A stretch of 64,000 nt of DNA from Orbicella franksi (Eukaryota): the NCBI GenBank assembly GCA_964199315.1, contig OZ116701.1:868001-932000 (forward strand), written 5' to 3'. The notes under the pieces are model-generated. The model had not been told where the DNA came from, made no database searches, and saw only the letters and a program-made list of their open reading frames with translations. Made by a program: the position numbers and the translations under genes. Shown here piece after piece: positions 12,001-49,000 of the stretch (the stretch's first letter is position 1; each line of letters begins with the position of its first letter).

Positions 12001-15000
12001 CATTGTGAGGATGAGTACATCCCATAACATCTTCATGGATGCAAGGAGAGTGTTCACCATCATCTTTAGACCTATAAAACAGCAAACTTAACTTTACTGT
12101 ACCTCCGGGACATAATGACTTTAATTGATGAGCGGTTAATCCCAACATCTGTTTCGATCTGTTTTCATATCGTAACTGAATCTTCCTAGATCACACAACG
12201 AGGAAGCTAAGTAATCGTTTATAATACTTGATAAATTATAAGAATCCTTTAGAATGAGTGTACGAGAAACGACGGTGGGGACGAAAGTAGAGCTAAGAGT
12301 AGACACACATGATATATGCAGGCTCGCGTTTTTAAATGTATCTCGGATGTTCTGGTCATGCATTCTTTCACAAACGATCCCTCTACTATTAAGTTGAGGT
12401 TCATATAGTTGAAATTGATATTAATTTGGGAAATAAAAGAGAAAGGTTTGATGAGCGCTAAAAAGCCAAAAAGAGTAAAGCCAATAGCGACCAAACGGCA
12501 TAATGAAAATGCATTGTAGTTTCATTTTGCTTTCTGTTTCTAAACTGACAATCACAAACCTTTTACGGCTGATATGGTTCTGAGAGCTCGAAACACTCGG
12601 AATGTCCTGATTCCAGAGAGATTTGCCACCCCAGGAGCAAAAGTTACATAGCTTGAGAAAGAAAAGAAATATAACAACGCTGTTTATATCGGCTGTTTAC
12701 GCGTGATCTGTGATTTACAATGAAAAGTTTCCAATCAAAAGAGATTGGAAACGCCCAGTTTCTTCCATTACTGTAAATACTCTTTTCCTTTAGCCATCCT
12801 AGCTTAATAAGAAATAGCACACAAACTGCTGTGACAAACATGACACTGAAACGCATTTTGGAAAACAAAATTCATTAACTTGAGGTTTCGTATGTTTCGA
12901 CATACATCTTCAGAAGTGACCGTTTGGAATAGAAGAAAAAACTAAATTTAAATTAAAGATAAGTAACTAATTAACAATAACAATGACAGAAGCTGAGAAA
13001 AATTTGCATATTAAAAGATGCAAACTAATAAAGATAAAGCTTTTTGCAGCTAACATTATCGTTTAGGGTAGGTTTCAATTCCCTAATTAGTAGAGTCTCC
13101 TTTATCTTGCAATGAGTATCTGACCGACCTTTTGCCAATATATCAAAGTGGTCCCATTTTAAGTTGTGACCAGTTGACGTGACGTGGCCTGCGATAGCAG
13201 ACGCATGACAGCTACTCGTGATCGCTTTAACAGGCAGCAAAACAGACCGAAGAATCCAACCACCACAGTCCTCAAAAAGGAAATAATCTTAGTTCTACCT
13301 TATTTAGAGTTACAAAGGAAAATTGTTACCAAACAGCTGAGGACCTGCATTAATAAATTTTATCATAGTAGATGGTTTGAACCCAGGAGTATCAGTAGTT
13401 CGTATAGTGTGATCGTCCGGGTGAGGGTAGTTATGAAAAGAACTGTTGTTGGTGACTGACGTTTCGACAACCGACAAGAGTCAAGTGAATAGTGTTTGTC
13501 AGTCGATGATCTTATAAGTCTGGTCCGTTGAACGTTATTGGTCAGTTTAGCCAAGATGGTACTGGCTGAAAGACTCGTGTAGAGTTTGTCATCAGTCATT
13601 GGTCGGTTTCGATCCGTCTATTGTTAGTCAAATTGGTCTGTTTTTGGTCCATGTATTGTGAAGTCGGTCTGTTAGAAGTCCGTTTGTCGGTTTCGTTTCC
13701 GTCGTGGATAAGTCGTTTGTAAGGCGCCGGTAGTTGTTGACGTCTGTTAAGAGGCGTTTGTTTTAGGTTAGTGTACCAGATTTTAATATGCAAATTTTTC
13801 TCAGCTTCAGCACATGGTCCACCCCTTAGTTGTTTGGGTTTGATTTTCTTAAGTAACGAGAGCCTGTTAACCTCCAAAGGTTCATGAGAATGTTTAAGCA
13901 CTTGTCTTGTGCCGGATATCCGGCGATATTTGACTCGATATAGGGATTAACAGTAAAATTCGACAAAATAAGAGATCCTACCCAAATATTACAACCACGA
14001 AATCCAGCCAATTCCACGGGTCTCGTAAATACGCATATTTGTGAAGAGCAAATCCTTTGGCAATTATTTTGAGAATCATTTCAACAGTATAAATAGCTGC
14101 AAATACATATCTGTTGAATGAGAAGAGAGAGACAGATAACCTGTTAACACCAGCAACTAGGGTACTATTTCCTTATCTCGGGATATCATCAGTTTTATCA
14201 GACGTCAATTAATACCGGATAGGATGTATGTTATAGACTTCTGGTTCTGTTGGTCTCCTTTTGCTGTATTTGACAACGTTTCCTCTGGTCATTCATGGGT
14301 TCGGTCCAATAAACAAAAATAATAGCCATCTTGCAGTTCGCGTTTTACTGACATTTGTAAAAAGTACGAACACGACGTGACTGTTCTGCACGTTTGCTCC
14401 CCTCCGTTTTTTGACTGGCGAAAAAATTCGCCTCACGTTTGCCCTTCTCGAGAGATGGCGGGAACTGCTTGTCTATCATTTTCACTTATTAAATCAAGCT
14501 AAAGAAATAACCAAGGGAAATCGTTTGGATGTTTGTAATGTTCACTAGCAAAGGGAAGAAAATTATCACTACTTTGATTAGTAATTATTACAAAGTGAAA
14601 TCAATTGGAAATACTCACTCAGGCTCCTCTGGAGGATTTGTCAATGCAAGAAAAACACAGTTTACTAAAATAGTTAGGATAATAAAAATTTCAAAATATC
14701 TGAACAGAGTTAAAGAATTTATCATCAAGAATGAATCAACACGGCATAGAAGTGACCAAACGTAAAGTTCTCAAAATAAAAAGCCTAGAATTTCCCTCTG
14801 AGCGCAAAACCCTTGGATGAAAATAGAGGAAAAGAAAGGATATTTAGCCCTCGGGGGTACTGAAACCTATCATGACCTTCGATTTCAATATGGAATCAGA
14901 TCGCCGTTGCTCTTCTGACGGCACTGGTCAACAAGGTAAAAGGGGGCAGGTTATTAATCATTAAGGAGATATTAAAGTTGAGGAAAGGTGGATGTCAAGT

Positions 15001-15665
15001 TTAAGTCTGTGACATGTTGTTATTTAAAGGGTTGAAAATTTGACACGACTTCTGAGCGTTATTCCCAAATCAGGGTTCGAACTCAGATCTCTCGCGCCAA
15101 AGTTTAACGAGCTTACTGAAAGGCAACTGAACCTACATCTTACTATGGAGATTTAATAATAATTTGTCCAAAGGATACTGATTTGTAGTTATATACAATG
15201 AAAACTTCCTAAAAGGGTGATTTTGACCAAATATATAAACAGATTTGGCTTTATTTAGTCTGTGCACGTGCGGCGTTCCAAAGCGGCTGGTGATGACGAT
15301 AAAGGTCTACAACAGAAAACAGATCAACTGAACATCACTCTACTTGACAAATAGATTCCATGTTGCCATGCGTCTGCTCAGTAACAGATCACAGATGACG
15401 TTAAAAAGTGACACATGAACCGTTAGGCGAATGTGTCACTGATGTTCTTACCACCTTTTGACGCCATCTATGATCTATTACTGAACAGCACGGCTACATG
15501 GAATCTATTTGTTTTATATGATAAAGAAACAAAAAAAAAATAGCTGTATATTTTATCCAACTATTTTCATAAGAGGACAATAGAAAACCTACATGTGCTA
15601 CTACAGCGAGCTAATCGTGTTTCTCGCGTTGTAAAAATAAATGTAAAAAATAAAAATCTTATTTG

Positions 15666-15725
<60 letters not shown>

Positions 15726-18700
15726 GAAACAAAGGAAACAAGTATTTCAAATGAACGTAACTTAGTTAAAAATCCCAACTGGCACGAGGCAGACCAGTTG
15801 GCTATTTACAAAGCGTGACCGAGGATTTGAACTCCTCGGGACTACCGAGAAACAATTCCCGCTAGTGGAAAAAAAAATCCAAACAAACAAATCCCGCTAG
15901 TGGCAGGGTGAAGGCCTTGAAGCCGGATTACAACACCAGCGCCCTAAGTCACTCGGCCACGCTGCCTCCGTAAGAGTTGAAAAATAAAGACCAACTCTAC
16001 CATGAGTAGAGTTGAATAATAAAGACAAAGACAAGACATGATCGCATTCGCACATCAAATTTATGAGCGCTGGATTATGTTTGCAAAACCTGAGTAAAAT
16101 TCTTCCGTTCTTCGCATGCTGAATTGTGTTTCCAGTAAAAGGATGCCTGGTACTCAAGACGCTGAATTCGAAATATTCAATTATCTGCTGACTGATACAC
16201 CACTACAGAAATATGTGTATATATGTTGTCCACTAATTTTCACCTGTGTGCGAAAATTCAAAACAGAAGACCACAGAGCATTCAAACCAATCCACGACAC
16301 GGAGCCGCGACTGAGGAGAGAGTTCTGTTTATTTAGGCTACATAACGTGAAATGCTTGATAGTGTTGTTAACCAAGGGCATCTTATTATGTCTCGTACTA
16401 CCTAACCACAAGCCACTTAGCCCACCGGGTTTGATTATTTAGATCTTATCAGTGCTAAACGCACAAGCGGGCTCAATGCCATGGGCACACGCGGTGCTAT
16501 TTACTCAGATCACTCCACTGGACTTGGTAAGTTTTCTTTTTCAGTTAGTCATGGAAAAACAAACAGAAGAATATTCTGGACGTTTTTAGTACAAGCTATG
16601 TTATTCAACTAAATACAACTACGATAGTAATTACAAAGGAAACGCAAAATTTAACGCAGGTGTTTTTGTTTGGAATATCATTCTCCCGGGGAGAATTCTA
16701 CTTGCTCGCTTGCTAAAAAGCAGAAAATTGATGGCAAAATAAAATGATAATCGAGGACGAAAAATGTTTTGATTTTTTAGATAAATATTAGGCTTAAGTC
16801 AGCTATTGATCTGTCTACCCTAATTTCCATTTTTTATTCCCTTTTAAACAAAGCTTTAAAACTTCTAAGGAAGGTATAGAAATAAGATGAAATTATTCCC
16901 TGATACTTAGTAGATAAATATCCAAATTCTCCTAACAAAATCATCACATTTTCAAGCAGTCAGCTAATGGGAATAACCGAACAAATCATCAAAGAGTGGC
17001 TTTATTTCTGTATATTGTCTTGATATACAACCAAGTTTTCAGAATTGAGTTAGCTGGCTGTACAATGACCAACTCTTGTCCAAAATCGGCAAAAAAGTTT
17101 CCTTCCTTACCTTGATCTCCATTTAGAGTCATGATCAGAAAAATCAACAAATTATTTTACGAGATTGCTGGCCGTGTTCGAAGATAACACTTAGAATTTT
17201 TATGTACGCCGTTAAAACTCGCAAACAATGATTCTGTGAGAGAGCGATAATTTATTTAACAAGATAAATCAAGGGAAACTCAGTTCAGTAGAGAAAAAAA
17301 TTGCAAGTTGTTCCTATCTATTAAAGTACAGTATGGCAAGCTTTTTATGATGGAGAAAACAATTTTCCTTGTTCGAAGACATGTCGTTTACTACACATTT
17401 CTCGGTTTTAATTGCGTCGTTGAAAGCCAGCACAGTCGCGTCTTTCGTTATCTTTTAAGACAACAAACAAACTTAACGCCAAATACAGCCACTACAGCGA
17501 TATTAACATGGTAAAATTAGTAGTTAACAGGGTTGCTATGCTTACAGGAATCGTTCACGAATTACATCGTTTTTCAATGAGGTTTGTGCCGTTGGATCGC
17601 AGAGAAGATCTCGGTAACCGCTTTTAAAGTATTAAATAGTTAATTTGTTTACCTTTCGTGGCTGAAATTTTAGTGCTTCCGTAAAATATATTTTGTCAAT
17701 TATACCACAGCCCAGAAGCCTATCTAATGTTCTCATCATAGCTTCAGTTTTAATTTACTGTTGATAAGCGCTATTTTGTAACGATCGACAGATTGTGCAT
17801 TGATAGTTAACCGACTACATTTCGCGACCATAATTTCCCATTTTTTTTTAATTAGGCGTCTGAAATTCGACGAAATCCGGTTTTAAATATTTTGTTTACG
17901 ACCAATTTTCAACGGTTTAAATTGTCTAAACTTACATCGAGGTAAAAAGGTTTGAAAGTCGTCATTGAAATCAACCTCGTCCAACGTGCGAAAACAAACT
18001 AAAATATCATAACTGATTCTGTATCGCTGTCCAGAATTATTTATGTTCAAGGAAATTGACACAAACTTGAAGTCTTTCCTAATCATAAAATTACCTCAGA
18101 AGAGTTCAGTTTCTCTAAGAAGCCTGATAAGGTACTATTAAGGGCATCCATATGAGGAACGATTACATGTATGAAGCGACAGCAGTAGATAAATACATTT
18201 CCGCAATTCTCAACTCGAAGCAGAACGTCTGCAAATCCAGAAAGATCAAAGGTTTCATGTCGCGACCAGCTGTCCAGTCGTTTTATAGTTTATACCAAGA
18301 CAAAGCTCGAGGTTTTTACGTGTGAGAGCTGAATAATTAAATATTCTTCAATTCAGCCAATTAGAAAGGTGCACAAGACCTGGTAGAAGACATAATGTCT
18401 CTCAGAAATCGCCGTGTTGATATTGATCATGAGGTACAGTGTTGAACAGAACAGGACTGTTGAGATATCGACACTTTCCTGAAGCACCGTACGTATCAAC
18501 TTCTATATCGTACTCTTAATCTACAAACATTGATTTCATTCATCCGACTACGACGACTACGTCTTCGAGCTGGTGTTGCCATGGAAACGGGGTTCTCCTC
18601 AAGCGACAATGAAATCGTTATTTTCAATTCACAAATTTTATCCTCATTAAAATGCATTAACGTGGATAAACCTAGTTTTGTTTGAAGAATGGGCAGTTGT

Positions 18701-21396
18701 TTGGTGGTTTCTGCTGACCGCAGACTAAAATCATTTTAGTCATAACAAAAAATCATACAGAATAACCGAGAACTACAATTTATTTTGTTGATGTGGTAAC
18801 AAAATGGTGTGGATAGGCCCTTCAGATGGAGCCATTTTCCTTTATCCCGTGAAAGGATATTATGAACATGTTTTATGCAGATGGATTAATTTGCGACACA
18901 AGTGAGGGGAAAACGGAACTTATTGACGTACATTCCCATTGTGAATTTCCATGGTATATTATCATAAAAAGGACAAGACAGTGTTTCAAAGATCTCTCAA
19001 ATACTTTTCGCTGCGGTCTGGATCGTTAACCTGTCGCCGTTCGAGGACAAGACTGTGCATGGTCTCGTTAACTTAGCGACACATGTTATTGACTTCAGAG
19101 ACGTAAAACCAGTCCAGCCGAATTGTGGCACGATCTATATTTGAGACTCACTAAGCCCTAGATTCGTCGTTCCTCGTGACGTTTCATCTACCTTACTTTG
19201 TTTTAGCTATTTATTTGATCTTGTTCCCGTATTTTTTGTTTTGTGTGATGCCCATGTTTAGACAAGGATTATCCTAACTCGCAACCGAGTCCGTCTCTTA
19301 ATCCCTGGCGAAATGGCGCATGATATTTGTAGCACCAACCATGATGTACTATTATCAATTATCATTCACTTTGAGCTTGGTCAAATGTTTCACAATAGCC
19401 AAAGATAGTTTTTCCCATTTGACCACGCTTATGATAGTCGATTATATTTGAGGAGATTCAACTATCATGTACTCTCTTTTTCAGCTAAAGGTGAAATGCT
19501 TCGTCTTGACGTATATTCTGTCTTGTGCCCGTCTTCAAAGAGAGAAACATAACCGTAATTCTAAACATCTATGATCTAGTATTTCTAATCTGCCTCGGAC
19601 AGGTTGTTCAAAGAGTTGATAAATCGCTCAATTTTCATGTATCGTGTGAAAATTAGAAGTCAAAATTAAGCACTCCGAGGACCTGTGTGGCGTAGAGCAT
19701 TACAAATGAAACTTTCTGTGACCAAGCATATTTAGTATTCGCTCTGATAACGTCACCTTATGATTCAATACAACTGAGGCAGTGTAGAGAGACAGACAAT
19801 TTTTGAGGTTTCTGCTGTTCTCTTTTCATTTCTTGTCGTGGGAATTTTACTGAGTAAACTTTTGATTAAGGCGGAAAAATATTAATTTCGTCAGCAAAAG
19901 GCTGAATCACTTTGCAACACAAAAAGTTATCTTAGTAATCGAAATGCAGTGTAGTTGAGACTTAAGATGAACACAGTATTCCACCCTTGTTTAAAATAAG
20001 AAACAAGATGGAAGAAAACCTTGAATCATGGCTGTGCTCAGCCAGACGAGTGCTTTTGGTGCCTTTGACCGCAAAAATACTGCAAACAGTTGAAAAGTAC
20101 CATAGAACAGTGCTTGCTGACGAAGTGAAACAATTAACAGAGTTTTCACATTCACTCAGCCTTGTACTAATTATGCTAATTGTTAATTATAAATGATTTC
20201 ATGTCGTTTACATGTAGCTACATGTATGTATCTGTTTTACAAGAATGTCTAAGTTTTTTTGGGGGGGCTGCTTGTGAATCAATAAGCATAAATCTGATAG
20301 AAGTTCAATCTCATGTACTATCTGTGCACGAAACAAATATTAGTAACGGAATTTGATTTTCTTATTTGCTTTTCTCATTGACATACAAGAGACAATATTG
20401 GGCGTCAGCAATTATATTCTGAACTATTGTTTGTACATTCCATTAACTAACATTATTTAGTGAACTGAACCATCAGTACAAAATATAAAATTTTATGTCT
20501 CACATATATGACATTAAACCTCATTTTATTATTTGTCTAATTTCCTTCTGTTTGGTCTGTTTGGGTCTGTTTTGCCACCATAAGCTTAATCAGTCATGAT
20601 GAATGATGTAAACAAATGTTTCTCTGTGTAAACAAAGATAATTGCTAGAGTGATAATGCTTTTCTCTTAGGCCAAAGAAAACACTTTTTGCGCTCTGAAC
20701 AACCGAACTCAAAGTGTCCTTGTCATTTTTTTCCAGTGAAGAAATCCATAAAGACAGAGCCACTAATTTATCGGAGAATAGTGACTAGCGGTTACTTGCT
20801 GAATCAGGACATCACTTAGTTTGCTTGTTAATCTTGATGTACAGACTGTTAACTAGGTATTCATAATTTGGCTATATGAACTTACAGGTCGCCTCCAGCT
20901 AAAACGAACTTGTAACCATTTGGAATTCATCATTCAGGAAACTGTTAGCCGTGAAATTTGTCGCATGATCCGAGTGAGTTCGTTAAATTTTGACGAAGCA
21001 ACACGCGCGGAAGCGGAATACAACTGATTTGCGCGTAAAAGGCAATCGGTTATATCGTGAGTTATAACTTAATTATTATCTTCAGCCGCTTCATAACTCA
21101 TTGCTTTTGATACAAGATGACTAGATGCAAAGAATATTACACTGAACTGAACTCACCTCATCATTACAGCCATGTTTGTCCTCCAACGGTCGATTGAAAT
21201 ACCTTGGTCGATCAGGGCAAAATTTCCGCATCATATTTTTAAAGAAGTCTTTGATTGTTTTACCATCGACACTGCTAGTCTCGCTGTTCCTACGGGTTGC
21301 CGACCGGCTAAAGTGGCTGGCATAACTAATTACGCTAGCTTGGGATAATCTTGTGGTTGCCCTTGTTGGGTTGGGCGAGAAGTTTTCGTTCTGTTC
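1..21396 (-). CDS. Gene B: voltage-gated Nav2-family channel alpha subunit (filter D-E-E-?), partial; the 3' part lies beyond the left edge
   Basis: Exons (minus strand): 21157-21396, 15179-15306, 14619-14699, 13982-14110, 12560-12651, 11877-12071, 11530-11590, 7862-8006, 7164-7298, 6497-6994, 5688-5876, 5122-5463, 4687-4885, 3646-3929, 1846-2019, 1305-1415, 408-671, 1-46 (partial). Phases are compatible and there is no internal stop. Pore motifs TLDFW, CGEWI, TFEGW. Many exon sizes are identical to gene A (128, 81, 129, 92, 145, 189, 174). Confidence 0.92.
408..671 (-). CDS. Gene B exon, DIII-S5 and P1
   Basis: [19 protein letters not shown]...[15 protein letters not shown]. Confidence 0.95.
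1001..1134. repeat. Decayed 49-bp inverted repeat (39/49 identical) with a 36-bp spacer
   Basis: 1001-1049 compared with the reverse complement of 1086-1134. Confidence 0.75.
1305..1415 (-). CDS. Gene B exon, DIII-S4
   Basis: [23 protein letters not shown]. Confidence 0.95.
1846..2019 (-). CDS. Gene B exon, DIII S2/S3
   Basis: AFEDVYL...[10 protein letters not shown]...AWNWLDV; 174 nt. Confidence 0.95.
2181..2874 (-). mobile_element. 3' fragment of a related L1/Tx1-like LINE, sense to gene B
   Basis: [12 protein letters not shown]...[17 protein letters not shown] aligns with [12 protein letters not shown]...[17 protein letters not shown] of the large element. AATAAA at 2210-2215 and A11 tail at 2181-2191. 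The 5' boundary is approximate. Confidence 0.88.
3122..3487. mobile_element. MITE with 15-bp perfect terminal inverted repeats
   Basis: TAGGGACCTTACGCA ... TGCGTAAGGTCCCTA. Confidence 0.85.
3646..3929 (-). CDS. Gene B exon, II-III linker and DIII-S1
   Basis: Ends [22 protein letters not shown]|gtgagt. Confidence 0.9.
4687..4885 (-). CDS. Gene B exon, end of DII-S6 and II-III linker
   Basis: [13 protein letters not shown]... Confidence 0.92.
5122..5463 (-). CDS. Gene B exon, DII S4-S6 (filter E at 5212-5214)
   Basis: [16 protein letters not shown]. Confidence 0.95.
5688..5876 (-). CDS. Gene B exon, DII S2-S4
   Basis: EMILKLIAF...WNIFDG...SVLRSFRL; 189 nt. Confidence 0.95.
6497..6994 (-). 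CDS. Gene B exon, I-II linker and DII-S1
   Basis: Ends [23 protein letters not shown]...NL|gtaagt. Confidence 0.92.
7164..7298 (-). CDS. Gene B exon, DI-S6
   Basis: [22 protein letters not shown]. Confidence 0.93.
7862..8006 (-). CDS. Gene B exon, DI pore (filter D at 7886-7888)
   Basis: [22 protein letters not shown]; 145 nt. Confidence 0.95.
8293..11505 (+). mobile_element. 5'-truncated L1/Tx1-like non-LTR retrotransposon (ORF2: RT and C-terminal CCHC), degenerate, antisense in a gene B intron
   Basis: RT motifs [42 protein letters not shown]; CLYCG...EHSFIEC. A 2-bp frameshift near 8700, and in-frame TAG at 9755-9757 and 11186-11188. Repetitive 3'UTR; A21 tail at 11481-11501; candidate TSD AATATG (8293-8298 and 11500-11505). 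Confidence 0.95.
11530..11590 (-). CDS. Gene B exon, DI turret ([19 protein letters not shown])
   Basis: 61 nt with AG/GT ends; VCGN motif. Confidence 0.9.
11877..12071 (-). CDS. Gene B exon, DI-S5
   Basis: [37 protein letters not shown]. Confidence 0.95.
12560..12651 (-). CDS. Gene B exon, DI-S4
   Basis: [21 protein letters not shown]; 92 nt. Confidence 0.95.
12775..13808. mobile_element. Composite of Penelope-like retroelement fragments (GIY-YIG ends, RT-linker fragment, degenerate hammerhead motifs)
   Basis: Minus strand: [47 protein letters not shown] (GIY-YIG C-terminus, about 13025-13216). Plus strand: [30 protein letters not shown] (about 13220-13363). Minus strand: [24 protein letters not shown] (to about 13780). 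Broken CTGAAGA...GAAA motifs at 12891-12913 and 13454-13472. Confidence 0.8.
13982..14110 (-). CDS. Gene B exon, DI-S2/S3
   Basis: [19 protein letters not shown]...RDPWNWLDF; 129 nt. Confidence 0.95.
14619..14699 (-). CDS. Gene B exon, DI-S1
   Basis: [19 protein letters not shown]; 81 nt. Confidence 0.93.
14700..15178 (-). other. U12-type GT-AG intron (gene B, same position as gene A intron 2)
   Basis: 5' GTATCCTTT; branch-like TTCTTTAAC at 14709-14717, 9 nt before the end of the intron; no long polypyrimidine tract. Confidence 0.88.
15179..15306 (-). CDS. Gene B exon ([10 protein letters not shown]...ITTNQ)
   Basis: 128 nt, same as gene A exon 2; followed by U12 donor GTATCCTTT. Confidence 0.92.
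15347..15512. mobile_element. Palindromic MITE-like element
   Basis: About 55-60-bp imperfect inverted arms beginning ACAAATAGATTCCATGT and ending ACATGGAATCTATTTGT. Confidence 0.8.
15667..15969 (-). mobile_element. tRNA-derived SINE-like repeat, copy 1
   Basis: tRNA-like head GGAGGCAGCGTGGCCGAGTGACTTAGGGCGCTGG... on the minus strand; highly similar to 32898-33171. Confidence 0.8.
18575..18588. promoter_or_regulatory. RFX X-box-like motif GTTGCCATGGAAAC (gene B intron)
   Basis: Consensus match only. Confidence 0.35.
21157..21396 (-). CDS. Gene B N-terminal exon (EQNENF...[15 protein letters not shown])
   Basis: Strong tttcag acceptor and GAG|gtgagt donor; 80 open codons; PLED motif as in Nav N-termini. 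Confidence 0.75.
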
Positions 21397-34065: not shown

Positions 34066-37000
34066 TCAGTCAGTCAGTCAGTCAGTCAGTCAATCAGTTT
34101 CATTTTAAGTTTGAAAGTCTTATAAATAAAACAGGAGCATTTAAAGATACAATGTCATTAACTGAAAGCTTACCTGTTGTTTTAGGCGATTGAAGTTTTC
34201 GATGATGACTCCAATGAAGAGATTTAAAATAAAGAACGAACCCAGAATGATGAAAACAACATAGTAGAAGTAGGCGTAGAAACTGTTCTCGTACCTTGGC
34301 TGCTTGTAATGCTTAAGACAAATAAAACAATCAGTTATGCCATCATACGATCCAACGATATCAATACGAAACATAAAAGAAACGTGAGTTGACAGCAGCA
34401 TCGGAAAGGACACGTGATTAAAGTATACTTACTCCTACGCCATCCACAGAATCTTGCATGACTTCAAAAACGCCTTCTAATGTAGCCTGAAATAAAACAA
34501 AAATTTCCAGGTAATTGTTTTTCTATCGCGAAATTGCTGAATATGTCTTTACCTATAATCCATCAAACATTTTCCCTGGCACGCGATTGGTCTCAACGCG
34601 TTACGTGCCTGGATATTCCCCGGCTAAAACTGGGCAACATCTGAGTGGTATTCCCCAATAGATCAGGCGTGTTGCGAAAAGTATTTGAAGGATAATAAAT
34701 AAAATAGCCTTCATTTTACTTTAGGACATGTTCGGATACTTGTCTTTGGACATGATCTGTTCCTTAAAGCTCAAAGTTTTCGCCGAGCTTTGCTCTCAGA
34801 CAAATGTTCGCTACTCGAACAGATAATGCATGCGGAAAAATATCCGGGAATATTTTCGCGCCACATGGAGGCTACTGTTTATATAGCTCAGTCACTATAA
34901 TCATAATGTTCCGCTGCGTTACAGATGCAAGCAGGCCTTACAGGTCTTATGGTGCTAGCTGATTGAATAAGTAAGACATTTTCCAGCTAGATTATTAGTT
35001 CATTTAATTCTCCAAAACTATACACTTGACCTAGTTAGATATTTAAACAACAACGTTTACATTTTTACATCAGCTACTCTGACTATCCCCTTCCCTAAGG
35101 AAGGCGTAAAATACACGTAGTGTACTTTAGTGTCAGTTACTTTGTGCCAGTTTTCCATTTATATCTTAATGAACTTTATGATTTCGATTGAACGAAAAGG
35201 CAGCGCTGTAGGTGAGGGTATTTTTTTTTTAACATTTTTTTCTCAAATGATCTTAACCATCCTCCTAAACATTCGCTGATTTGCTTAATTCTCACTGGAA
35301 ATAGATGTTTGTCACCCTGTTGACCAGGTCTGATAACTTGAGATTAAGTTAGTCACGTGGGCGCCTTTAAGGTTGCACATCATCATCACCTTTGATTGTA
35401 AAGACTCACTTCGGCTGAGTCTGACGTTTTTCAATGAGAAATAAAGACTTCATTAATTCATTACAGGTGTAAACAAGGCAAGGCTAGTGGAAGCGAAAGC
35501 CACTTCTCTTCCAATTCTCCTATCCGTTTACGCCTGCTTTGAAGGTTATGAAGTTTATACGTACAACTTGAAACAAAGCCAAGAATCCTTGCAAGGAACT
35601 GTCGAAGTTGATTTTTGCATTCATCCAGCGCATGCCCAGGGACTCGTTACACTGCTCCTTATTCTCGACTATGTGCCAATCAAATATCTCCAAGGTTTTG
35701 TTATCAACGCATCTGTAGAATTTCCCGTTAAACAGCTGATAACCAACAATACTGAAGATGAGCCAGAAGATCAGGCACACCAGCATCACGTTCACGATCG
35801 CGGGAACAGCGTGCACCAACGAATTCACGACAATCTGCAACGGCAGCACAAAAAACTGTAAGCGCTTCCCGCTACGCAAGGAATGGTGATTTCTGTCTGT
35901 CATCTTATATTATAAAATGCAAATACCCCAAAATAGCAACACCAAATAACCCAAATTTTCCAATTTCAGGCGATCGCAAGTAAGAGAAAATGAACAATGA
36001 ATAGACATTTACTTGCGCTAACCTACCTTCATTCCCTCAAACCGCGAGATCGCTCTGAGAGGTCTTAAAGCTCTGAGAGATCTGAACGACTGCAGATTTT
36101 TGCTACCAGTAAGACTTGCGAGAGAGATCTACAAAGCAAGACAATGAAACAAACAATGTAAAAGAGTAGAACGCAGGTAATATATATGGGTTAGTGATTT
36201 CAGTTATGCCCTTGAAGTTGCCTGCTACTTGACTCTTTGATTTCGTGGCCTTCATATTCTGAGCGCCCGTGGAAGTCAATGTTTTAAGTAATTTAATTTA
36301 CACCAGGCAACAAAATGAGACGAAGCCTGCAAATACAGGCGTCTCTCTCCCGACAAACTATTCAGAAGCTGTAAGTGCGGCTGTAACCGCATACTTGCAA
36401 AGACATAAAATAAGGAGAAACAGGAAAGACCCAGATCACCAAGACAGACAACGAGAAACAGATGGCGATCAAAACAGACAGGAAACATGGAGAAAAAGCA
36501 TGGGATGGGCACCATAAAGAATGCTGTGTAGTCTGCAGCAACTTACCGCTACAATGAAACTGTCCAAACAGTTCCACAAGTTGGTAAAATAACCCACGAA
36601 ACCCATGCCGAGGATTTTAAGAAGCATTTCCACTGTAAAGATGATCGCAAATGAGAAGTTCATCACACCTAGCGCACTCTCCAGCAAAGGATTCTTTTTC
36701 AAATGGATGTCTTCAAACACCTGTAATAAGGAATTCGATTCAAATGAGGGCGAGTGCTCTCTCTAACCAGACGGAGATGCTGTTACTTCAGCCCCGAGTC
36801 ACACATGTAATCTCAGTCACTCAAATCAGAGAATCTTGTCTTACTATGAAAAAATGAATAAACTTTGCAAGTGTCAGAGGTATTTGACTTGTGCAGCTAT
36901 TTGTGGATACACCTTACATTAGAAAAAATGACAATAAATTCACTATGTTAAAAGAATAAGCTGTCAAGATGTCGTTTCCTATGCTGGTCAGAGCAAATAT

Positions 37001-40000
37001 ATACAGGATTTCACATGACCGCTTTTTCTTCTCGTGTTGAAAAATATTTAAACTCATTCGCAGCGCTCAGTCGTGAAATATTTTTCAATACGAGAAGAGA
37101 AACTTCGAACCTTCGAGTAGCCATTTATAATGTAACCATAGCAACGATGATCTTTTAATGTGTGAAGACACTGTAACATGTTATTTTCGCGTGTGAAGAC
37201 ACTGTAATATGTTATTTTCGCGTGTGAAGATATCACGTTTTTGCGCGAAAGCTCGCCTAGTATTTCATTGGTGTTTATATAATAAATTACTTTCTCAGCC
37301 AATCATGTGTAGAATAGGAAACGTGATTTGCCTTGTGCCCGGCATTGGCTGCTACCGATAGGTTCATAGGTTCGAAGTCAATGGTGCATATTAAAGAAAA
37401 TGTCTGGAAATATCTAAAATGATACATGGGTTACAATAGTGAAATCCTCAGAGCAATGTCGAGAACGGCTGTGGTAAATGTACTTTGATCCATACAACTC
37501 TCAGGTCAGTTGTGAACAAACTGTTAGAACTTACCAAAGTTAAACTGCTTATGACAATCATGAACAGAATGAACCACTCGAAGTATTTATGCTCCACAAA
37601 AGTACACACATAGTAACGCAATCCATGCCAGCTTCTTCGAATACAGGACTCCTTATAATTGTCACAACAATTACTCTCACAGTAGCAGAACGCTGGGCAA
37701 CAAGGCCTCACTCCACCCGGGGGAGTAGTATCGTCGGTATCTACCGTGACAATCGTGTCACGCTTTGACTCATGACCCGGGCTGTTTGGTGGAATGCGTG
37801 ACTCTATGTCACCAAGACTGACGTCTTTGTGTGACGATCCGGTTGACATGCGCGAGTTTCCGTTGATCACCACAGGGGCTGAGCCATTGGCGACCAGATC
37901 TCCGTTACTCAAGTTGTTGTCACTAGGCTCCAGTCTGTCGTCACTCTTGACACGGTTGACGCATGGCAATCTCTTGTTTGAATCTGGAAGGTCCCGGATT
38001 CTTAATGCTGCTTCGTCCAGATCAAGGGCGGTAGTCAGTGAATGGCGGTTTTCAATGGGAAGAGAATTCACTTTGGTGTTACGTCCTACAGGTTTACCTG
38101 GAGTTTCGTCTGAGTTAAAAGGAAATCAATTCGTCAAAGTTGTTAACTCACTACCGATCTCAATACGGGAAAGCCCTCGCTAGGAATTAAAATCAATAAG
38201 TTACAATATTTAGAGAGCCGTAGATGGTTTTCACGAGGGTCCTCTTCCCAGGTCGAATCAGTTGCAATTTGTAATACTGGTTTTTCAGGAGGAGGAAACC
38301 TGGAGTATCCGGATAAAAACCCTTGGAGCAGGTACGGGAACCAACAACTCAGATATGACACCAGGGGCCCGTTTCTCGAAAGTCCCGGAAACTTTTCGGG
38401 CCCGGAAAGCCGTAGCAAAATCTCTACCCTTACTATTACAGAGCTGTTTTGTTTACATATTCTTAATATGAACAGAAGTTCCCTTCATACAAGAAGTTTC
38501 AGGCGTATACACTTCTCCGTTTTTAGATACAGATGAACTAAAAATGGCTTTACGGGCCCGGAAAGTTTCCGGGGCTTTCGAGAAACGGGCTCCTGGCCAG
38601 AATCGAACCTGGGCCACATCGATGGAAGGCGGGCTCCCCAAATATAAAGACTCTAGACATAAAAACCTGAGCGGATATTTTACAGAGTACTTGCCTCGGG
38701 TATGCCTACGTGCTGCAGATTTGTTCAAAATGGACTTGCTGAAGTTAAAGAGGCGGGCATGACTTACCAAAGTTGTACTTGAAGCCATTAGAATTATCCT
38801 GCTGTGTTTGACCGTTCGGCAGTCGGTTGACAAGTGTCATCTCGTAGCCGTTCTCTTGTTCTCCATTTTTGAGATTGTCCGACAAAGTGATTGCCGCTTC
38901 TTTCTTGGTTCCATCGTCAACTGGGCTTATCGTCCTCGAATGAGCTTCCTCGTCCGTTCCATCACCGTCTTCATCTGGTCCCACTTTACTTCGACTCCCG
39001 GAAAGATTTTTGTTTTGTCTTCCAAGCATACGAAGAATGTCTAACCGCCTCTTCCTCTCTTTTTCTTTTTTCTTCCTTTTCTTTTCTTCTTCTTTCCTTT
39101 TCTTTTCCTCTTCGTCTTCCGGCTCCTCGTCGCTGTCTGCACTGAACGAGTTCAACAACAGTGCAAGGAAAAGATTGAGAATCACAAAATTGCCGATGAC
39201 GAATGCGGGCAAGATGAGGCAGATGGCAGCGGGAGATGTTGCCCTCATTGTCCACCACAGAGGCTCGATCCATTTACCACATAATATCCTAAAAATCACC
39301 ATAAATGAGTGACCGAAATCCTTGAAATTCCACCGTGGTAGCTCGCCATTCTTAAACTTGTCCGCAGTGTAGTCTTTTTGGAAAAGCTGCATGCCGACCA
39401 CAGCAAACATGTAAACAATGATAGCGAGTATAACAGTGATGTTACCCACAGGGCCTACACTGCTCCCGATTGTGTTCAAAAGGTCACCCATTGTTTTCCA
39501 CGATTGAGCGAGCTTCAGCACACGAAGCTGTGGAACAGAAAAACAAACTAAAGCTTTAGTTTTTCCTCATTCTGTGTATTAGTTATTTGCGAAAACTTCG
39601 TCCTTCAAGATCCTATTCAGACACCGTATTGCATCTCCTATACAGTAAAAAGGATAATGTGCTTAAACGTCATTACTACAAGCTAGTTACTCTTTTGGAT
39701 GTGTTCTCAGCCTGTCAGAGAGCAACATTTCTCACGTGCATTCGAAACGATTTGGACTTTTTTGATTTCCAGGTGGAAAACGAACAAAACCAATGCCAAG
39801 AGGACGTACAGACCAGGTACCTAACACATGCATGTAAATGTCCGAGCTAAATATCAGCCAATTAACACCCGAGAAGATCAAGTAGATAATAAATGTTATC
39901 ATCAACATACCAGTCTGAAGGTTCGCAACACGCTTAATCCAGCACCACTGATGGCACCAGAGTAGGTCAGAACCATGTCTAAAACACTAAGAATTACAAT

Positions 40001-43000
40001 TGTCCCGTCAAACAGGTTCCACTTGTTTTTGCAGTACTCTTTGACGCCAAATGCGATCAGCTTCAGAATCATTTCCATAATGAATACCACGGTAAATACC
40101 TAAGAAACACATCGAGATAAAGAGTAGGCGAGTCAATAAATACAACAACACTCAAGAAATGTAACCAGACAAGCACCTTGCTACCTTTTTACAGCAGCTA
40201 CTATTGCCAAATCTTAATTTCAACGTCGACTTTCTTAATCTACCTTGATCTTTACCAATTTATGATCACCGGTTCCCTTTTGTCTTATTTCATTCTCGTA
40301 AGTGTTTTTCTACCTGTGTAAACTATTTTTTTTTAATTTTTCAAATTCGATTTCAGGGTGATTTTGCTCATCGCTAAAGATGTAACAACAACAACAACAA
40401 CTACATCCTCTATTTATTCAAGTAGATGGTACAAGAAAAGCGTTGATTGTGCCTTAGCGTTTCTAAGACAAACTAACACAATTCGTTAAACATTATTGTT
40501 CGCTGTCGAGGAAAAGGTTGTTGTTATTCATCGTGGAAGATGCAATAATAAAGTGTATCATCGTTTGTCTCACGATGTAGTCACGTGAGATGTAGATCGC
40601 GACGTTTCGACTGCTTACTGCTAGTCTTCTTCAGGCGATAAGGTCGACTGATTGCACGGTATCATCAATAGGAGGATCGAAATGCACCAATCACAGCCGA
40701 CCTTTGTGATATAAATGACACCGTGCAATCAGTCGACCTTATCGCCTGAAGAAGACTAGCAGTAAGCAGTCGAAACGTCGCGATCTACATCTCAAGTGAC
40801 TACATCGTTAGACAAACGATAATACACTTTATTATTATTGTCCGCGTTTATGGTTAATTGCAGGAGTTTGATAAATATCACTTACCAGATTACAGTACTC
40901 GAGCACCTTAGAAAAAGTCCCGTCCATTTCAAAGTGCTCCAGGGCCATTGCCAACGTATTGAACAGGATACACAAAGTAATGAGGGTCTCAAACACCGAG
41001 GAATTCACGACTCTTGACACGAAGTTTCGTGTACGCCTCCAGCAACTCGGGTTTCCTGGGACCTCGACAGTCACCTCCGTTGGTTCCTCGGGTTCTACGG
41101 GATGTTCAGATTCTTCCGGGTGAGCTGCTATGTAAGCCTCGCGCTCCTCAATTCGTTGTGTATCTTCTTGGTACAATGGTTCTGGGTCCATTTGTCCGTC
41201 AAACGAATAAGTGGAGGCGGATCGTTTGAGTTTGGCAAACGTTTGCGCCTAAAGGAACAAAGACAAGAGTGCACGAGATCAGCTAGCAAGTCAGAGGGAT
41301 GATATTTGATGAGACTTCGTCAAAGGTCAGAATCTGTCGACAGTTAGAAATGTAGTCGATTATCTGTTATCAGTAATGATGTTTGATACGTAAGACTTTC
41401 CGACCATTTGGTTCGTGGTGGTGTATCTAATCCCATCTGAAAACTCGTTGAACCTCATTCAAACCTTCACTCGCAAATATGGCTGAGTTAATAATTGCAA
41501 AACTAACAGTACAACATGAAAGTACTGCTGAATTACTTCCAAAATAATGGCCACAAACTAAGGTATCACCACAGACTTGAGAGTGTGTACGTCTGTAAAT
41601 GAAACCCTGATGCGGTGTGAGCAGTACTTTCATGTGGACTCTTAATTATGCTGTACAAGGTGGTTCTAACTTTTGAGTCTGTGGATGAAACCCTACTATG
41701 TGACGATTTAAATGAAAGCTATGGAGCAGTACTTTCATGTGGAACTGTTTATTATGCTGTACAAGGTGGTTCTAACTTTTAAGTCTGTGGATGAAACCCT
41801 ACGGTGTGACCATTCAAATGAAAGCTATGGAGCAGTACTTTCATGTGGAACTGTTTATTATACTGTACAAGGTGGTTCTAACTTTTAAGTCTGCAGATGA
41901 AACCCTACTGTGAGACGATTTGACTGGAAGATATTGAGCAGCACTTTCAAGTGGTAGTGGAAGTGCTGTTAGTAACGCTACCTAAAACTAAGGTTTCATC
42001 CACAAAATTAACAGTAAGAATAAACTTGCACAGCATAGTAAACAGTACTACGTGAAAATACTGTTGAAAAGCGTTGGTTTTAATGAATACACCCCAGAGT
42101 TTCAAAACCCAACTTAAAGTTAGAACCTCTAAACACGCATTTGCTACGGCCTACATTCGCGTACGGCATTGATTTCTTTAGATAAAGATTTTCTGTACTC
42201 AAATCTGGAGCTTTCAGTGATATAAACAAAATGTCCATGGAGCGAAGAATCTCACTCACCCGAAGAACTTGATCCTGCAATGCTGCAGTTTCTTGTTCGT
42301 ACGAAAGCGACACGACAGCCAAGACAAGATTGATCAAGTAGAAAGGACCCAGGAAGATCACAAACAGGAAATAAAATACGTACCACGGTCCTTTGGTAGC
42401 AATCACCTGCATGGAAAGAATCCACATCAACTGAGAAAACTTGGCCGGAAAGTGAACAAATGAATGTCACTTCGAGAAAGCAAGACAGCCTTAGAACTTA
42501 GTTGATGGCATGGCCTCATATTCAGATACGTATCGCTCGTCACACAGTTCACTAAATCTATACATATCTAAAGTGCGTACCAATTCTGGTAAACAAACAA
42601 TTGCTTATACAGCGACTATTATCTGGGACAATATCCCTACTCATCTTTAAGATCTCAATACCTTCAACTTCTCGAAACATCTGAAACTTTATTTACTGTC
42701 TGAACAACATTCTGAAAACAAGTAATATTCCTATATGCTCTTTATTTCCAATTTTATGTACATATCTCATTCTCTTAATAGCTTTTTTTCTCTTAAATCT
42801 CCATAGAAACATAATAACTGGAGGCTGACTAGAAAACCCTTGGTTACTTCAGTCTCCAGACTCATATAGTACACATTTTTCTTTGTCTTTACATTTCACT
42901 GATATAAAAAAAAACTGTAAATGTTCGACTAAATAAAGTTATTGTTGTTGTTGTTAAAACTCTACTCACGCTGTTGTAAATGCTTTCCCAGTAATCCATT

Positions 43001-46000
43001 GTGACTAGTTGTAGAGAGGTTAAAAGCGACCAACCAAAGTTATCGTAGCTAATGTACTCAGATATAGGATTTGGTCCCGTATTCGGCATACACGTGTAGT
43101 TAATGGGACATTCACTTTAAAAAAACACACAGGAAGAACGTTAGGAGCTGGAAAATCGTGAAAACATGAACTGGCCGACTTAGCAAGAAGTTTAATCAAC
43201 ACATGGATCGAAACTTACAAGGCGACGGAAGAGTTTCCACACAAAACAGCCATGTTATCGCCCGCGAAAATATAGTGATTACCTGAATAATAAACACACG
43301 CATTGTCATATTGTCAATAATCATACTGAACATACAGCGAGCGAGATGCGCTTTCGACACCAAGGTGGGAAAACCAGAAATATCAGTATAAATTTCTTAA
43401 CTACTCAGTCTGAGTAAAGGAAAATCTTTATTCGCGGGCCCAATTCTTTGCCCGCTCGAGAGATGTCAGAGACTGGACCCAAAAACTTCCATACTAATGA
43501 GGATGTTCAGATTCGTATCTCTGATTGGTTGTTTCTCGCGCGTCAAAATTCAAAACCGAGCAACAACCAATCAGAACAATACACAGAACTTATAGTGACG
43601 TTATCAGTATGGAATTTTTCAGGTCAAATCTTATCTCTCCAAAGATACGTCTGTTTACCGACTCAGGCAACAAGTAATTCGTAAGAGTAATTAGACTGAG
43701 TAGAGTACATAAAATTCGGGGAATAATCCTGCGAGTAATTTAAAAATGGGACGAGCGCGCAGCGCAAGACCGAATTAAAATTACGAGCACGAAAAATAGG
43801 CGCGCAGAGAACCAATCACGATGGAGATTGGTTAAGGATTAAGGATACGATTTAAGAGATAATCGTTTACTTACTTTCATTCTGCAAGTACGCACTGAAA
43901 GCTTCTTGATCTTGTGGCCATCCATTGGGATGATTACGAACACATTTATGCTGCATTACGCCAACGAAAAGTTGAAGGCCAATAAGTGCAAATACACATA
44001 AAAAGAAAGTTGTAAGTATAAGAACATCAGAGAGCATTCTGATAGATTTCAACAGCGTATTAACCATGGCTTTTAAACCTGCAATACCAAAAAGAAATAC
44101 TGATTTTAATCTCAGTACAAAAACATACTAACCAAATCAATTTTATCAAGGGCTCAAAAGCTATTAAGGGCGCTTTCCATTCAAACAAAAAGTCCGGAAC
44201 TTTCGAAACGGGAGCAAATGAAACCAAAATATCCTTGGAAAACCTCCAAAAAATCAGATAATTTTCACATTTCCAAAATGCGAACCATTCAAACAAAAAT
44301 TTCGGAGACTCTGAGAGGAAAATAAATTGGAACGAAATTAAGAACCCGTAAGACATTTTAGGACATTTGGATTTATCTTGCCAGGTTATCCTAATGGAAA
44401 TTGCCAGAAATGCAAACCGGCAGTTTTGGTCGAATGGAAAGCACCCCAACTGAAACAGGTGGTGCGCTAAATCTGTTTACCTTTAACTGCTGATATGGTC
44501 CTCAAAGCTCTAAGAACTCTGAAAGTTCGAATTCCCGATAAATTTTCTACGCCAGGAAGCATTGTTATATAACTGCAAGAAAAGGAAAGTGACATTTAGC
44601 TATGCTTCCATCACCTTCGCGTGCTATTGGAGACGGGAAATTAAACATTTTCCTTTCATTGATTTATCACACATTTTCCACCACTTCTTAATTTTGATTG
44701 ACTAAATACACCAGCAACCGCCTGAAATAAGAGACTCCTTCCACCATATGTAAAGTTAAATAATTGGGATGGGCAGTTTGGAGAAATCAAGCGAGAGTAC
44801 CCCACGCCGTCCTTGTCAAGGCAGTATAACAGACATTTAAGTCACCAAGCGATCATAAGTATCCGTGACGTTGGAATCTTCTCATGTACTAACATCACGG
44901 ATATCTGATTCCTTTTTCGTAGCTGAGGCAGCTTTGCACGTAAATCTTAACCCCATAAATAATACACAAAACTCAAAATTGCTTTGCTTTTAATACTATT
45001 ACGACCGAAATAAACCAAAGGTTAAAATTCCAAAAATAGAGTGCTTTGACAGCAGGACCTTCAAGACAAGGAGTGGTCAATTGAGATAATTTTAACTCAC
45101 CTACTAACGAAAGATTTTGAAGATACCAAATCAAAATTTATTGGTGATGTAATTATCAATCCCACACTAATACCATTAAGCTCTGTTTTGATGACACAGC
45201 TCAACGACGGTTTGTAATCCGGCCAGTACATTGCGAAATCGTGCAATAACAGTAGCAGATAACCGCACTTAACTCACCCTAAAACTACTACTAAAAAGTC
45301 TAACCAATTCCAAGCATTTCTAAGATAAGCATATTTGTGGAGCGCAAATCCACGACCTATGATCTTGAGGAACATTTCAAGTGTATAAATGGCTGCGAAC
45401 ACAAATCTGTGGGATAGAATAGATACAATGCACGGTATTAGTCACGTATAGACTCTTGAGTTAATAATTTAATAAGTGAATGAGGTGAATCTTAGAAAGG
45501 GAAAATCAATATCAGTTGGTGTAAAGAGACAAGATAGAGAAGATTCTGAGTTTGATTATATTTAACTCTTCCGACTTTAGACGGACAACTTATAGACCCA
45601 GGAAGATATATCAGTCTGGTCAGGATAACCTTTAACGGTTAGATGGAAATGAAATAATGATGCTTTGTAGGAGTTATCGGAAATGGGTGCGATAATGATC
45701 CACATCGAACGAAATCCGAGTATTACAAGATTATGTAAGAGTTAATAAACGATCTATTGACACAAAAGTCACCAAAGTTGACTAAAATGTCTTTAAAACC
45801 CGATGATAGCCTTCACTACTACAGAAAGAATGATAACTATAAATGACCAAAGATGACTAAAGAACAAAGATGGGGAAGAATGCCTCGGTTTAAGAACAAA
45901 GCAACTCATGTTCTCGGACAATTGAAGCCCTTAATATTTCAAGATGTACCATCATTTCCAGCAAGGCATTAAACGATTAACATCACAGGTTACAAGTGGC

Positions 46001-49000
46001 GAGCAACGACCGTTCCAGTTTCGAGATCCAACTAGTAATTCTCATTACTGATCGTCACATATTTCTTTAGTTTTTAGTTCTGAGAATTGGGGGTTACACC
46101 AAGACAATATCCGCAGTAAAGACTGGACCACCTGTCAGCTGGAGAATGCATTCATATTTTGAGGAAAAATTAGATGTTCATGACTTTTTGCAGTTAATGA
46201 GTTCAATACAATCAATTCGTTTTGACTAGACGTCTATCAAATTGGTGTTAAAAAAGACAAACACAACGTCGTTTCCATGGAAACAACCGCCTACGTAATC
46301 TCAAAAAGATTAACATTACGCGTCAGTCGTGATAACATAGCAATTTATGACACGAACAAAGCCAATTCTGCTAAAACTGTCGGTTAGCGACAATCAGTAC
46401 ACACATAAACAAATATTTCTCTGGAAATTGAAACAAAATTAAACAAAAAAGTCGGCAATGCAGTACCACAACCACATTGGTGAATTGGTTGATTGGTGAG
46501 TGGCATGGCCAAAATTTCACTTTACATCTGGATCGCGGTACACAGCGGTCAAATTCGAAAACTCATCAGGGAGATAATTCAGTCTTACGATTCAAAAGAA
46601 AAAAAATGACAAAAATACCAAGATAACCTTGACAGTTTAAGTAAGTTGTTAAGAAATCCAGATTTTTCGATTAATTTCACATGGTGTTCATAGCACGAGA
46701 ACAATATCGATTTGACCATCAAAAGTTGCCGAATTTATTTCAAGTGCTGCACTTATTGCTAATGACCACGAAAAGATAATTAAATAGCTCTGGTTTACTG
46801 GCAGATAAAATGAGAACGCAAGGAGAACTCGTCTGCTTCATAACTTACATATTTGAACATGCCATATAGGCTCAAAATTTATCATTTGTTCAGCGGTAAC
46901 GTCGAGAGAGGTCTAAAGTTTTATTAGTAACTGAAGAAGATTCTTTACAAGTTGATCCACAATTAATTCTGGCCGGCGCCTGGTTGTCTCTTTTACAAGT
47001 TATTCGCTTCACAAAACAAAAGCTGGATTCTACGAAAAACCACTATATTTGTCTTGCTACGTCAGTGTCCACTGCCAGTAAGGAACTCCAGACAAAATCA
47101 CGGAACTCGTCAACCAATAGACTGACATTCAGAGCGATAAGAGTGAAGCCAAAACAGCTTAGACACATAAAATAGGGCCACTTTTAACAATCTGCCAGAC
47201 AAGCTGACTCGCTTGCTTCACTGCCCAGCCAAGCGAGTCATCATTACATCAACCGAAGACATAATCATGTTATTTACTCCTCGTTCAATAAATCCCCTGC
47301 CAAAACAAACGAATTGCCATATACTTCTCTTCTCTTTATTTTTAAAAGCGACCCTGCCTGTGTATTTGCTCTACCAAAACTTATGACGAAGTCGTGGAAA
47401 AACAGATATAATCTCAAAAGAAAAGTGGTTTTTTAGTCTTTTTTTCTAATTGAATATACAAAATTAGGGGTTGTTTGCAGAGCATCTAAACCTTTTATTT
47501 GCTCTACACATTTCTTACAGCGTTCGCGGGTCGGATTCTAGGGGACTGAGGAAAGAGACCCCCCCCCCCCCCCCCTTCGAGAAAGTGCACCCGCCATGCA
47601 AAAGATAACCGAAAAAGAGAGGAAGGGAGGGAGGGAGGGAGGGGGGGGGAGGGGGTAGAGAGAGGGAAAGGAAAAAATACTCACTCTGCCTCTTCTGGTG
47701 GATTGCTCATAGCCAGGAATACACAGTTTGTTAAAATTGTCAGTAGAATAATAAGTTCAAAATATGTGCGCTATGGTCAAGGAATCAAACAGCACAAGGT
47801 GACCAGCAAATAACTCACAAAAATACACAAAAAACGTTCAAACTAGAGTGACCTTAGGTGTATTAAGTTTGACCCATTTCCCCACATTTTACAACCAACC
47901 AACCTGGCAAATGTTGCGCCATGGTAAAGGTTTTGGTCACTCTCTTGTCACGCCGTCTTATAAACGGAAGGTCACGCGAGTTTTTTTTTTCAGTGGACAG
48001 TTCCTTTTTTCAGAACAAGATTGTCTGTACATGTGGTACTGATCTTTCAAGTATTTGAGGTTGACACTGTAATACACAAGACAAGACGGGTTTGCAAAAA
48101 ACAAAACAACAAAAAGAAAAACAGGTGTATGAGAAATTTAGTCACATGAACACGACAAACGCACAAAAACAAACAAACAAACAAACAAACAACTAAAATA
48201 GAGCAGGACGGACCCAAACGCGCTAAACACCAGCAGTTTTTTCTGCGTATAACGTAATTAATGTAATAACTGTCTATAAACTAGTCTGTAATAAAGGATA
48301 TTGATGTGTTATTAGAAAAAGTACAAATCTTCGAATCCTGTTCCTAGGACTGAAGAGATAAAGGGAATCGGAGGCGTGGAAGCGGTACACATACTGTTTA
48401 CCAAACTTGTTCGCAACGATGAGAAAAGTCTGAAAACAGAAACAAGAAAAAACATCACATAAATAAAATCAATTACCTACACAAGCGATATTTATATTTA
48501 GCTCGATAAAAATAATACATATTCACCGAATCAGAAACAGTTTTACGAGGTAATGACAATTTATCTCGCCGAAAACACAATAATTTACGCCTTCAGGGAA
48601 GTAATAAAATCTACCTTCCGTTTTCAATGCGGTCAAAAGTTTGAATATATATCCGGCAAAATCAATCTTATTTTGGAACACGCAAGTCCTGTTAAGGATA
48701 GGTTTTCAAGGCGATATTTTTACACTGAATGAAAATAGTCTAGACGAACAAATTTGGTGGAAGACAACCAAATGAGTTGATATCACTGCCATGGGCGCAA
48801 CATGGGCACAAGCGAATATCGGAAAGGACTTATTCAACAAAAGAATAAATACATCACGGTTATTGCTTTGTTAGACGATAAGTCTTTATTTTAATCCTTC
48901 TCAAAAGCCTGTAAATTGCTTAAACGAAAAGTACGCTTTTCTTTGCCGTAATGAACACAAATATACTGTCATGGTGTACAAACAGAAGCACGGAAATTTA

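Follow-up and report, generated by a model that had tools for sequence, protein, structure and literature searches.

How does one minor (U12-type) intron come to be bounded by AT and AC in one sodium-channel gene and by GT and AG in the gene beside it? The question is raised by a 64-kb stretch of the genome of the coral Orbicella franksi (assembly GCA_964199315.1, contig OZ116701.1, positions 868,001 to 932,000; hereafter the window), in which two voltage-gated sodium-channel genes, A and B, lie head to tail on the minus strand. A sequence-only reading of the window had taken the difference for a switch of subtype caught between two neighbouring duplicates. That interpretation did not survive: A and B are not sisters, five of the six Nav2 genes of this coral have the GT-AG form and in anemone orthologues the states are the other way round. 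We hold instead, with a probability of about 0.82, that both are genuine, ancient U12-type copies of the intron ahead of segment S1 of domain I (DI-S1), that they lie in old paralogues and that the subtype has flipped recurrently, AT-AC being probably the ancestral state. Coordinates throughout are positions in the window, and introns and exons are read on the minus strand.

The intron at DI-S1 was reportedly recognised by Wu and Krainer in 1999 as a conserved U12-type (AT-AC) intron of channel genes, and switching between the U12 subtypes is said to have been described by Burge in 1998. That vertebrate channel genes hold a U12 intron at this position, as stated in the sequence-only reading, agrees with the literature: the intron is described as a conserved feature of nearly every Nav and Cav gene, those of Nematostella and Polyorchis among them (PMC6259924), and minor intron 3 of SCN5A follows c.392 (c.392+1, phase 2; PMC13602164). 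An origin before the cnidarian-bilaterian split, proposed in the same reading, is also borne out and was already in print, conservation from cnidarians to vertebrates being credited to Spafford (1999) as far as that work is cited in PMC6259924. Both U12 subtypes occur within 36 ortholog clusters, for which a path from AT-AC through GT-AG to U2 has been drawn (PMC2831892). SCN10A has AT in human and GT in mouse (PMC1557818, Table 3), the donors being ATATCCTTT and GTATCCTTT, respectively (PMC6717393, supplement file 3). Orbicella faveolata was among the genomes of a 3000-genome survey of minor introns (PMC10639083).

The DI-S1 intron in genes A and B

The features of gene A that bear on the question are as follows.

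28464..53561, minus strand: gene A, a Nav2.5-type (DKEA) sodium channel, from 5' untranslated region/exon 1 to the end of the 3' untranslated region
48302..48429, minus strand: coding exon 2, 128 nt, ending ACACATCA (protein ...ITH + CA)
47766..48301, minus strand: U12-type AT-AC intron, 536 nt, phase 2
48293..48301, minus strand: 5' splice site ATATCCTTT, matching the U12 consensus at 9/9 positions
47776..47784, minus strand: branch site TTCCTTGAC, 10 nt ahead of the terminal AC, without a pyrimidine tract
47685..47765, minus strand: exon 3, 81 nt, starting A TAT TTT GAA (Q/YFE, the slash marking the junction)
32754..33211, minus strand: second AT-AC intron (domain IV), starting ATATCCTTT and ending AC

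A 7.9-kb mRNA contig (L041) from a related coral (~96% nucleotide identity) falls on gene A in 22 collinear blocks, and the O. faveolata models XP_020607114-6 map onto it. The intron region is 99.2% identical to O. faveolata GCA_002042975.1, and the protein of the 128-nt exon is 100% identical to the O. faveolata model. Exons 2 and 3 are joined at 48302/47765 in L041 and in a second mRNA contig of the related coral, L042. A shared ATAT leaves a 4-nt ambiguity at this junction; among the possible cuts, AT-AC alone fits a known splice class, and the spliced protein, ...FLITHQ/YFELIILL, matches the O. faveolata RefSeq models. The intron ends with TTCCTTGAC followed by CATAGCGCAC, and this branch site is complementary to the GUAAGGAA box of the U12 small nuclear RNA (snRNA) of this genome. 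The other introns of the gene provide a ready comparison. Another 19 introns that map cleanly with the mRNA contig are of the GT-AG type, most of them combining a GTRAGT-like donor with a pyrimidine tract, and the ATATCCTTT donor is confined to the AT-AC introns 48301-47766 and 33211-32754. No TCCTTRAC-like branch motif was found in the last 30 nt of the latter. RNA runs containing words of the DI-S1 intron of gene A (up to 0.89) were not counted as a sign of its retention, since DNA carry-over may account for them.

Gene B is only partly contained in the window.

1..21234, minus strand: gene B, a Nav2.4-type (DEE-) channel, partial, located by tblastn with Montipora XP_068681879
15179..15306, minus strand: exon, 128 nt, ending ACAAATCA (protein ...ITTN + CA)
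14700..15178, minus strand: U12-type GT-AG intron, 479 nt, phase 2, with boundaries placed by homology
15170..15178, minus strand: 5' splice site GTATCCTTT
14709..14717, minus strand: branch site TTCTTTAAC, matching at 8/9 positions, 9 nt ahead of the terminal AG
14619..14699, minus strand: exon, 81 nt, starting A TAT TTT GAA

Recognisable exons run from 15306 past position 1, the end of domain III and domain IV lying to the left of the window, and the first coding exon is tentatively placed near 21178-21234. The intron ends with TTCTTTAAC followed by TCTGTTCAG, a short pyrimidine-rich end, and its branch site carries one C>U change that would pair G.U with U12. When spliced, the protein would read ...YITTNQ/YFE, which matches annotated or transcript-derived orthologues. 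Among these are 10 acroporid mRNA-derived proteins of the gene B orthologue (P0185 and nine others), each a 1730-amino-acid open reading frame on a 5.4-5.7 kb contig, that read TTNQ/YFE. No Orbicella protein model of gene B came up in a second protein search. As a separate observation, an RNA contig of depth 12 (X26 record 11) covers 14619-14761, comprising exon 3 of gene B together with 62 nt of the preceding U12 intron, and departs from the genome exactly at the exon donor 14619, with 25 letters unmatched; it might come from a transcript that had lost the next intron but still kept this one.

The arrangement seen in the sequence-only reading, a phase-2 intron between exons of 128 and 81 nt ahead of DI-S1 in both genes, with AT-AC at 47766-48301 in A and GT-AG at 14700-15178 in B, was thus confirmed on the minus strand, and its coordinates and motifs were exact. 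Both introns split the codon CA/A (Q), and their removal would restore Q/YFE. Typing of the introns as U12 relied on consensus matching, on comparison with the other gene A introns and on conservation across 16 homologues. Each of the two has RTATCCTTT at the exon end, a branch site 9-10 nt from its own 3' end and AT-AC or GT-AG termini. Against an expectation of 1.5 copies, the window has five of RTATCCTTT, all on the gene strand, and three of the five stand exactly at Nav exon ends. This excess, the strand, the placement at exon ends and the branch 9-mers 9-10 nt from the 3' ends exclude an origin by chance. Two copies of ATATCCTTT, at 14843-14835 (inside the gene B intron) and 18860-18852, have no preceding exon and were themselves taken as chance occurrences. 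A Pfam scan of the two 42-amino-acid exons gave no hits, the exons being too short.

The machinery that these signals call for is encoded in the genome, where the genes for U12, U6atac and U11 all exceed the Rfam cut-offs. The U12 copy has GUAAGGAAAA, which pairs with UUCCUU and, with one G.U pair, with UUCUUU of gene B; U11 begins UAAAAGGGCC, which pairs with CCUUU. Splicing would be expected to follow the usual minor pathway, with U11 pairing to RUAUCCUUU at the 5' splice site and U12 to UUCYUURAC at the branch site, the branch A lying 11-12 nt from the 3' end. The two terminal bases of the intron would pair with one another in a non-Watson-Crick manner, as A-C or G-G, and therefore a change of subtype would require both ends to change. 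If the intron were retained, translation would run on for 9 codons in gene A and 15 in gene B before an in-frame stop, so the output of either channel would be predicted to depend on a slow splicing step.

Paralogues, orthologues and their subtypes

The relationship between A and B was examined with an IQ-TREE phylogeny of 39 full-length proteins, the topology of which equals that of a quick tree. Gene A groups with coral and Actinia orthologues as sister to medusozoan Nav2.5 (100/100), and gene B groups with Montipora orthologues and Nematostella Nav2.4 (100/100). The clade of gene A is nearer to the paralogues D, E and F than to gene B, the grouping of D, E and F with Nav2.5 having support of 94/92. 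The selectivity filter is DKEA in the gene A clade and DEE(A) in the gene B clade, and A and B share 37% identity in the exon ahead of the intron. Nav2.4 and Nav2.5 are named here after the Nematostella and Clytia GenBank records AEX00070, AEX00073 and AEW90240 that fall in the clusters. Gene A, with DKEA and its clustering with Clytia Nav2.5, would thus belong to the sodium-selective Nav2.5 (DKEA) channels of cnidarians, and gene B, with DEE- and its clustering with Nematostella Nav2.4, to Nav2.1-2.4 (DEEA), both being known here from sequence. Because of the tree placements and filter residues, A and B are assigned as orthologues of Nav2.5 and Nav2.4, respectively, and as old paralogues rather than sister duplicates or recent tandem copies; their split is older than the divergence of Anthozoa and Medusozoa. 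Of the six Nav2 genes found in the 497-Mb genome of the coral, five lie on a single contig (G000:C4, at 0.87-0.93, 11.41, 18.07 and 18.09 Mb) and the sixth at G000:C1:34.32 Mb; paralogues E and F have a head-to-head arrangement, ~20 kb apart.

The site Q/[YF]FE is shared by the six Nav2 genes and five Cav-like genes of this genome and by five genes of other cnidarians. RTATC[CT]T is common to all 16 homologous DI-S1 introns, 15 of which also carry a U12 branch site at a distance of 9-14 nt from the 3' end. The 11 in this genome all combine an RTATCCT donor with a branch motif of the U12 type that lies 9-13 nt from the acceptor. Their subtypes are as follows.

Nav A, this genome: AT-AC
Nav B, C (Nav2.1-like), D, E and F, this genome: GT-AG
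Cav-like L036 and Cav3-like L039, this genome: AT-AC
Cav-like L037 and L038, this genome: GT-AG
Cav-like L035, this genome: AT-AA, judged by reading frame
Nematostella Nav2.4: AT-AC, ATATCCTTT...TCCCTTGAC+10...AC
Actinia orthologue of gene A: GT-AG, GTATCCTTT...TCCTTAAC+10...AG
Nematostella Nav2.1: GT-AG
Clytia Nav2.5: GT-AG
Rhopilema: GT-AG

Among the six Nav2 genes of this genome GT-AG is the rule, and A is the sole AT-AC. Contigs of coral metagenomes were also scanned for DI-S1 introns. The gene A intron is present in five distinct variants, all AT-AC, of which three are 74-80% identical to the intron in the window, one is 99% identical and one is unalignable. The gene B intron is present in at least four variants (67-94% identical), all GT-AG, and Nav2.1-like and F-like copies are GT-AG as well. 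Within stony corals, then, each of the two orthogroups keeps to one subtype. The anemones have the opposite arrangement: scleractinian Nav2.5 is AT-AC and its Actinia orthologue GT-AG, whereas scleractinian Nav2.4 is GT-AG and Nematostella Nav2.4 AT-AC. The intron of the Actinia orthologue ends in GCGCAG where that of Orbicella ends in GCGCAC.

Three minor observations concern the same site. In the Cav-like gene L035 (4861-5052; G000:C11, ~10767360-10767551, plus strand), ATATCCTTT stands at the DI-S1 site, and the frame (..VEWK/PFDVMIL) forces an AA intron end after GCCTTGAC/TCTTGAC, giving an apparent AT-AA minor intron; AT-AA is the commonest non-canonical class of minor intron (PMC10639083). 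Nav2.5 of Clytia hemisphaerica (L046:56138-56863) has a perfect GTATCCTTT donor and a sole TTCCTTAAT 27 nt from the AG, followed by a pyrimidine tract. It resembles a U12 donor joined to a U2-like 3' end and is possibly a conversion in progress. Three distant Nav-like genes of eukaryotes in the metagenomes (L072, L108 and L119) have short GT-AG introns with GTAAA donors no more than 1-2 nt away from the DI-S1 site; spliced forms of such genes are present in related metatranscriptome contigs, and the introns are possible U2-type replacements or slid introns.

History of the subtypes

Since coral and anemone orthologues have opposite subtypes, at least one switch, in either direction, took place in each orthogroup within Hexacorallia. 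The reversed anemone states and the GT-AG majority therefore make the difference between A and B the sum of separate, lineage-specific switches, and A and B by themselves do not reveal its direction. Most likely the ancestral state was AT-AC, which gave way to GT-AG on several independent occasions. AT-AC is favoured as ancestral because it is kept in Cav3-like, another Cav, vertebrate Nav1, Nav2.4 and Nav2.5, and because surveys point the same way (PMC2831892).

The alternative that survives best makes GT-AG the ancestral state of cnidarian Nav2, with AT-AC regained separately in coral Nav2.5 and in Nematostella Nav2.4. Counted as unordered changes on the tree, the subtypes need a minimum of two changes within cnidarians, or three when the AT-AC intron of SCN5A is included, and a model limited to AT-AC to GT-AG needs at least five. 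The alternative is nevertheless unlikely in our view, as it must accommodate AT-AC in every deep branch (the Cav and Nav genes just listed; PMC6259924), a Nav of Polyorchis reported as AT-AC (Spafford 1999, to the extent cited in PMC6259924) and surveys in which switches usually run from AT-AC to GT-AG (PMC2831892).

It is improbable that the gene B intron is now removed by the U2 spliceosome and is U12-like in looks alone, a conversion in progress. In favour of such a conversion, U12 introns of the GT-AG subtype are the usual route to U2 (PMC2831892), the branch site of gene B has one mismatch, the last 18 nt of the intron are fairly pyrimidine-rich and Clytia Nav2.5 combines a U12 donor with a distant branch-like motif and a pyrimidine tract. 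However, the donor GTATCCTTT is a perfect site of the U12 type and a poor one for U1 (A at -1; T, C and C at +4 to +6), and the branch motif, 9 nt from the AG, is too near for U2. Both motifs are retained in at least four coral B orthologues, although these introns are only 67-94% identical, and in all the other GT-AG paralogues, which argues for selection by U11/U12.

A recent tandem duplication followed by a single AT-AC to GT-AG switch in one copy, which adjacency, common strand and identical exon sizes and intron phase would suggest, is highly improbable given an exon identity of just 37%, the grouping of A and B, at 100/100 each, with medusozoan Nav2.5 and Nematostella Nav2.4, respectively, filters of DKEA against DEEA, anemone orthologues in the reverse states and four further paralogues that are also GT-AG.

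Several points weigh against recurrent switching of two genuine U12 introns from an AT-AC ancestor, and they concern both splicing and direction. The gene A junction is seen in mRNA of a relative (~96% nucleotide identity) rather than in reads of this species. For gene B, the region 11500-16400 was mapped with four RNA runs, two of contigs and two of raw reads (sibling species), and no spliced read or contig crossed the intron in any of the four. In the two sibling-species runs raw-read depth was zero on the exons and was found on intronic repeats only, and the low-depth contigs that spanned exon and intron represent unspliced RNA or DNA. As spliced RNA was not found for gene B, its predicted junction rests on homology to five paralogues and on the ten acroporid mRNA-derived proteins. 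Of the RNA check proposed in the sequence-only reading, the part concerning A therefore held, in L041 and L042, and the part concerning B gave no joint, a result that does not itself speak against the predicted boundaries. Removal of either intron by the minor spliceosome is inferred from the motifs. As to direction, unordered parsimony favours a GT-AG ancestor of cnidarian Nav2 with AT-AC regained twice, and the states of D, E and F were put on the tree via Oculina proxies (89-95% identical over 115 amino acids). The comparison across cnidarians, proposed as a means of polarising the switch, thus established at least one switch per orthogroup in Hexacorallia, in one direction or the other.

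Compared with what is known, gene A is a plain member of the conserved AT-AC class at DI-S1 of Nav1, Nav2 and Cav1-3 genes (human SCN4A intron 2 and SCN5A intron 3, for example), alike in position, phase 2 and ATATCCTTT/TTCCTTRAC. Descriptions in print stress AT-AC, whereas most of the cnidarian Nav2 copies here, including B, are GT-AG. The switching resembles that known elsewhere, including SCN10A of the same gene family, in that both ends change and the donor and branch motifs stay; it differs in the number of switches at one position in one phylum and in the opposite states of coral and anemone orthologues. The antiquity of the intron and the existence of subtype switching are already known and are unchanged by this case. 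The new part is the family-wide pattern of recurrent switching at one intron, a clean and well-bounded example for the record of minor-intron evolution, in which U12 signals are kept at one position in 11/11 four-domain channel genes of the coral while the termini are AT-AC, GT-AG and apparently AT-AA. With opposite subtypes in corals and anemones, the family could serve to measure the rates and direction of switching and to test the effect of subtype on the splicing speed of neuronal channel mRNAs. A bolder suggestion, which we regard as doubtful, is that the DI-S1 minor intron of cnidarian Nav2 is a hot spot at which the subtype has switched repeatedly and perhaps both ways, with AT-AC regained from GT-AG in coral Nav2.5 and Nematostella Nav2.4. 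If true, it would challenge the one-way view of AT-AC to GT-AG and would offer a natural series on whether, and how, the terminal dinucleotides alter splicing efficiency.

Repeats and a distant channel-like frame

The segments 13304-13795 and 15272-16091 in gene B introns and 32892-33158 in a gene A intron are repeats on which RNA contig depth reaches thousands, with many loose ends and opposite-strand joints. Between the copy at 15664-15956 and 32892-33158 there are matches in several frames, at up to 94%. These repeats look like an expressed transposon or foldback family within both genes. Elsewhere in the genome, G000:C14:4482811-4484826 holds a stop-free open frame of 1765 amino acids with 24-29% identity to channel domain I, which may represent a four-domain channel-like gene without introns, a retrogene or foreign DNA.

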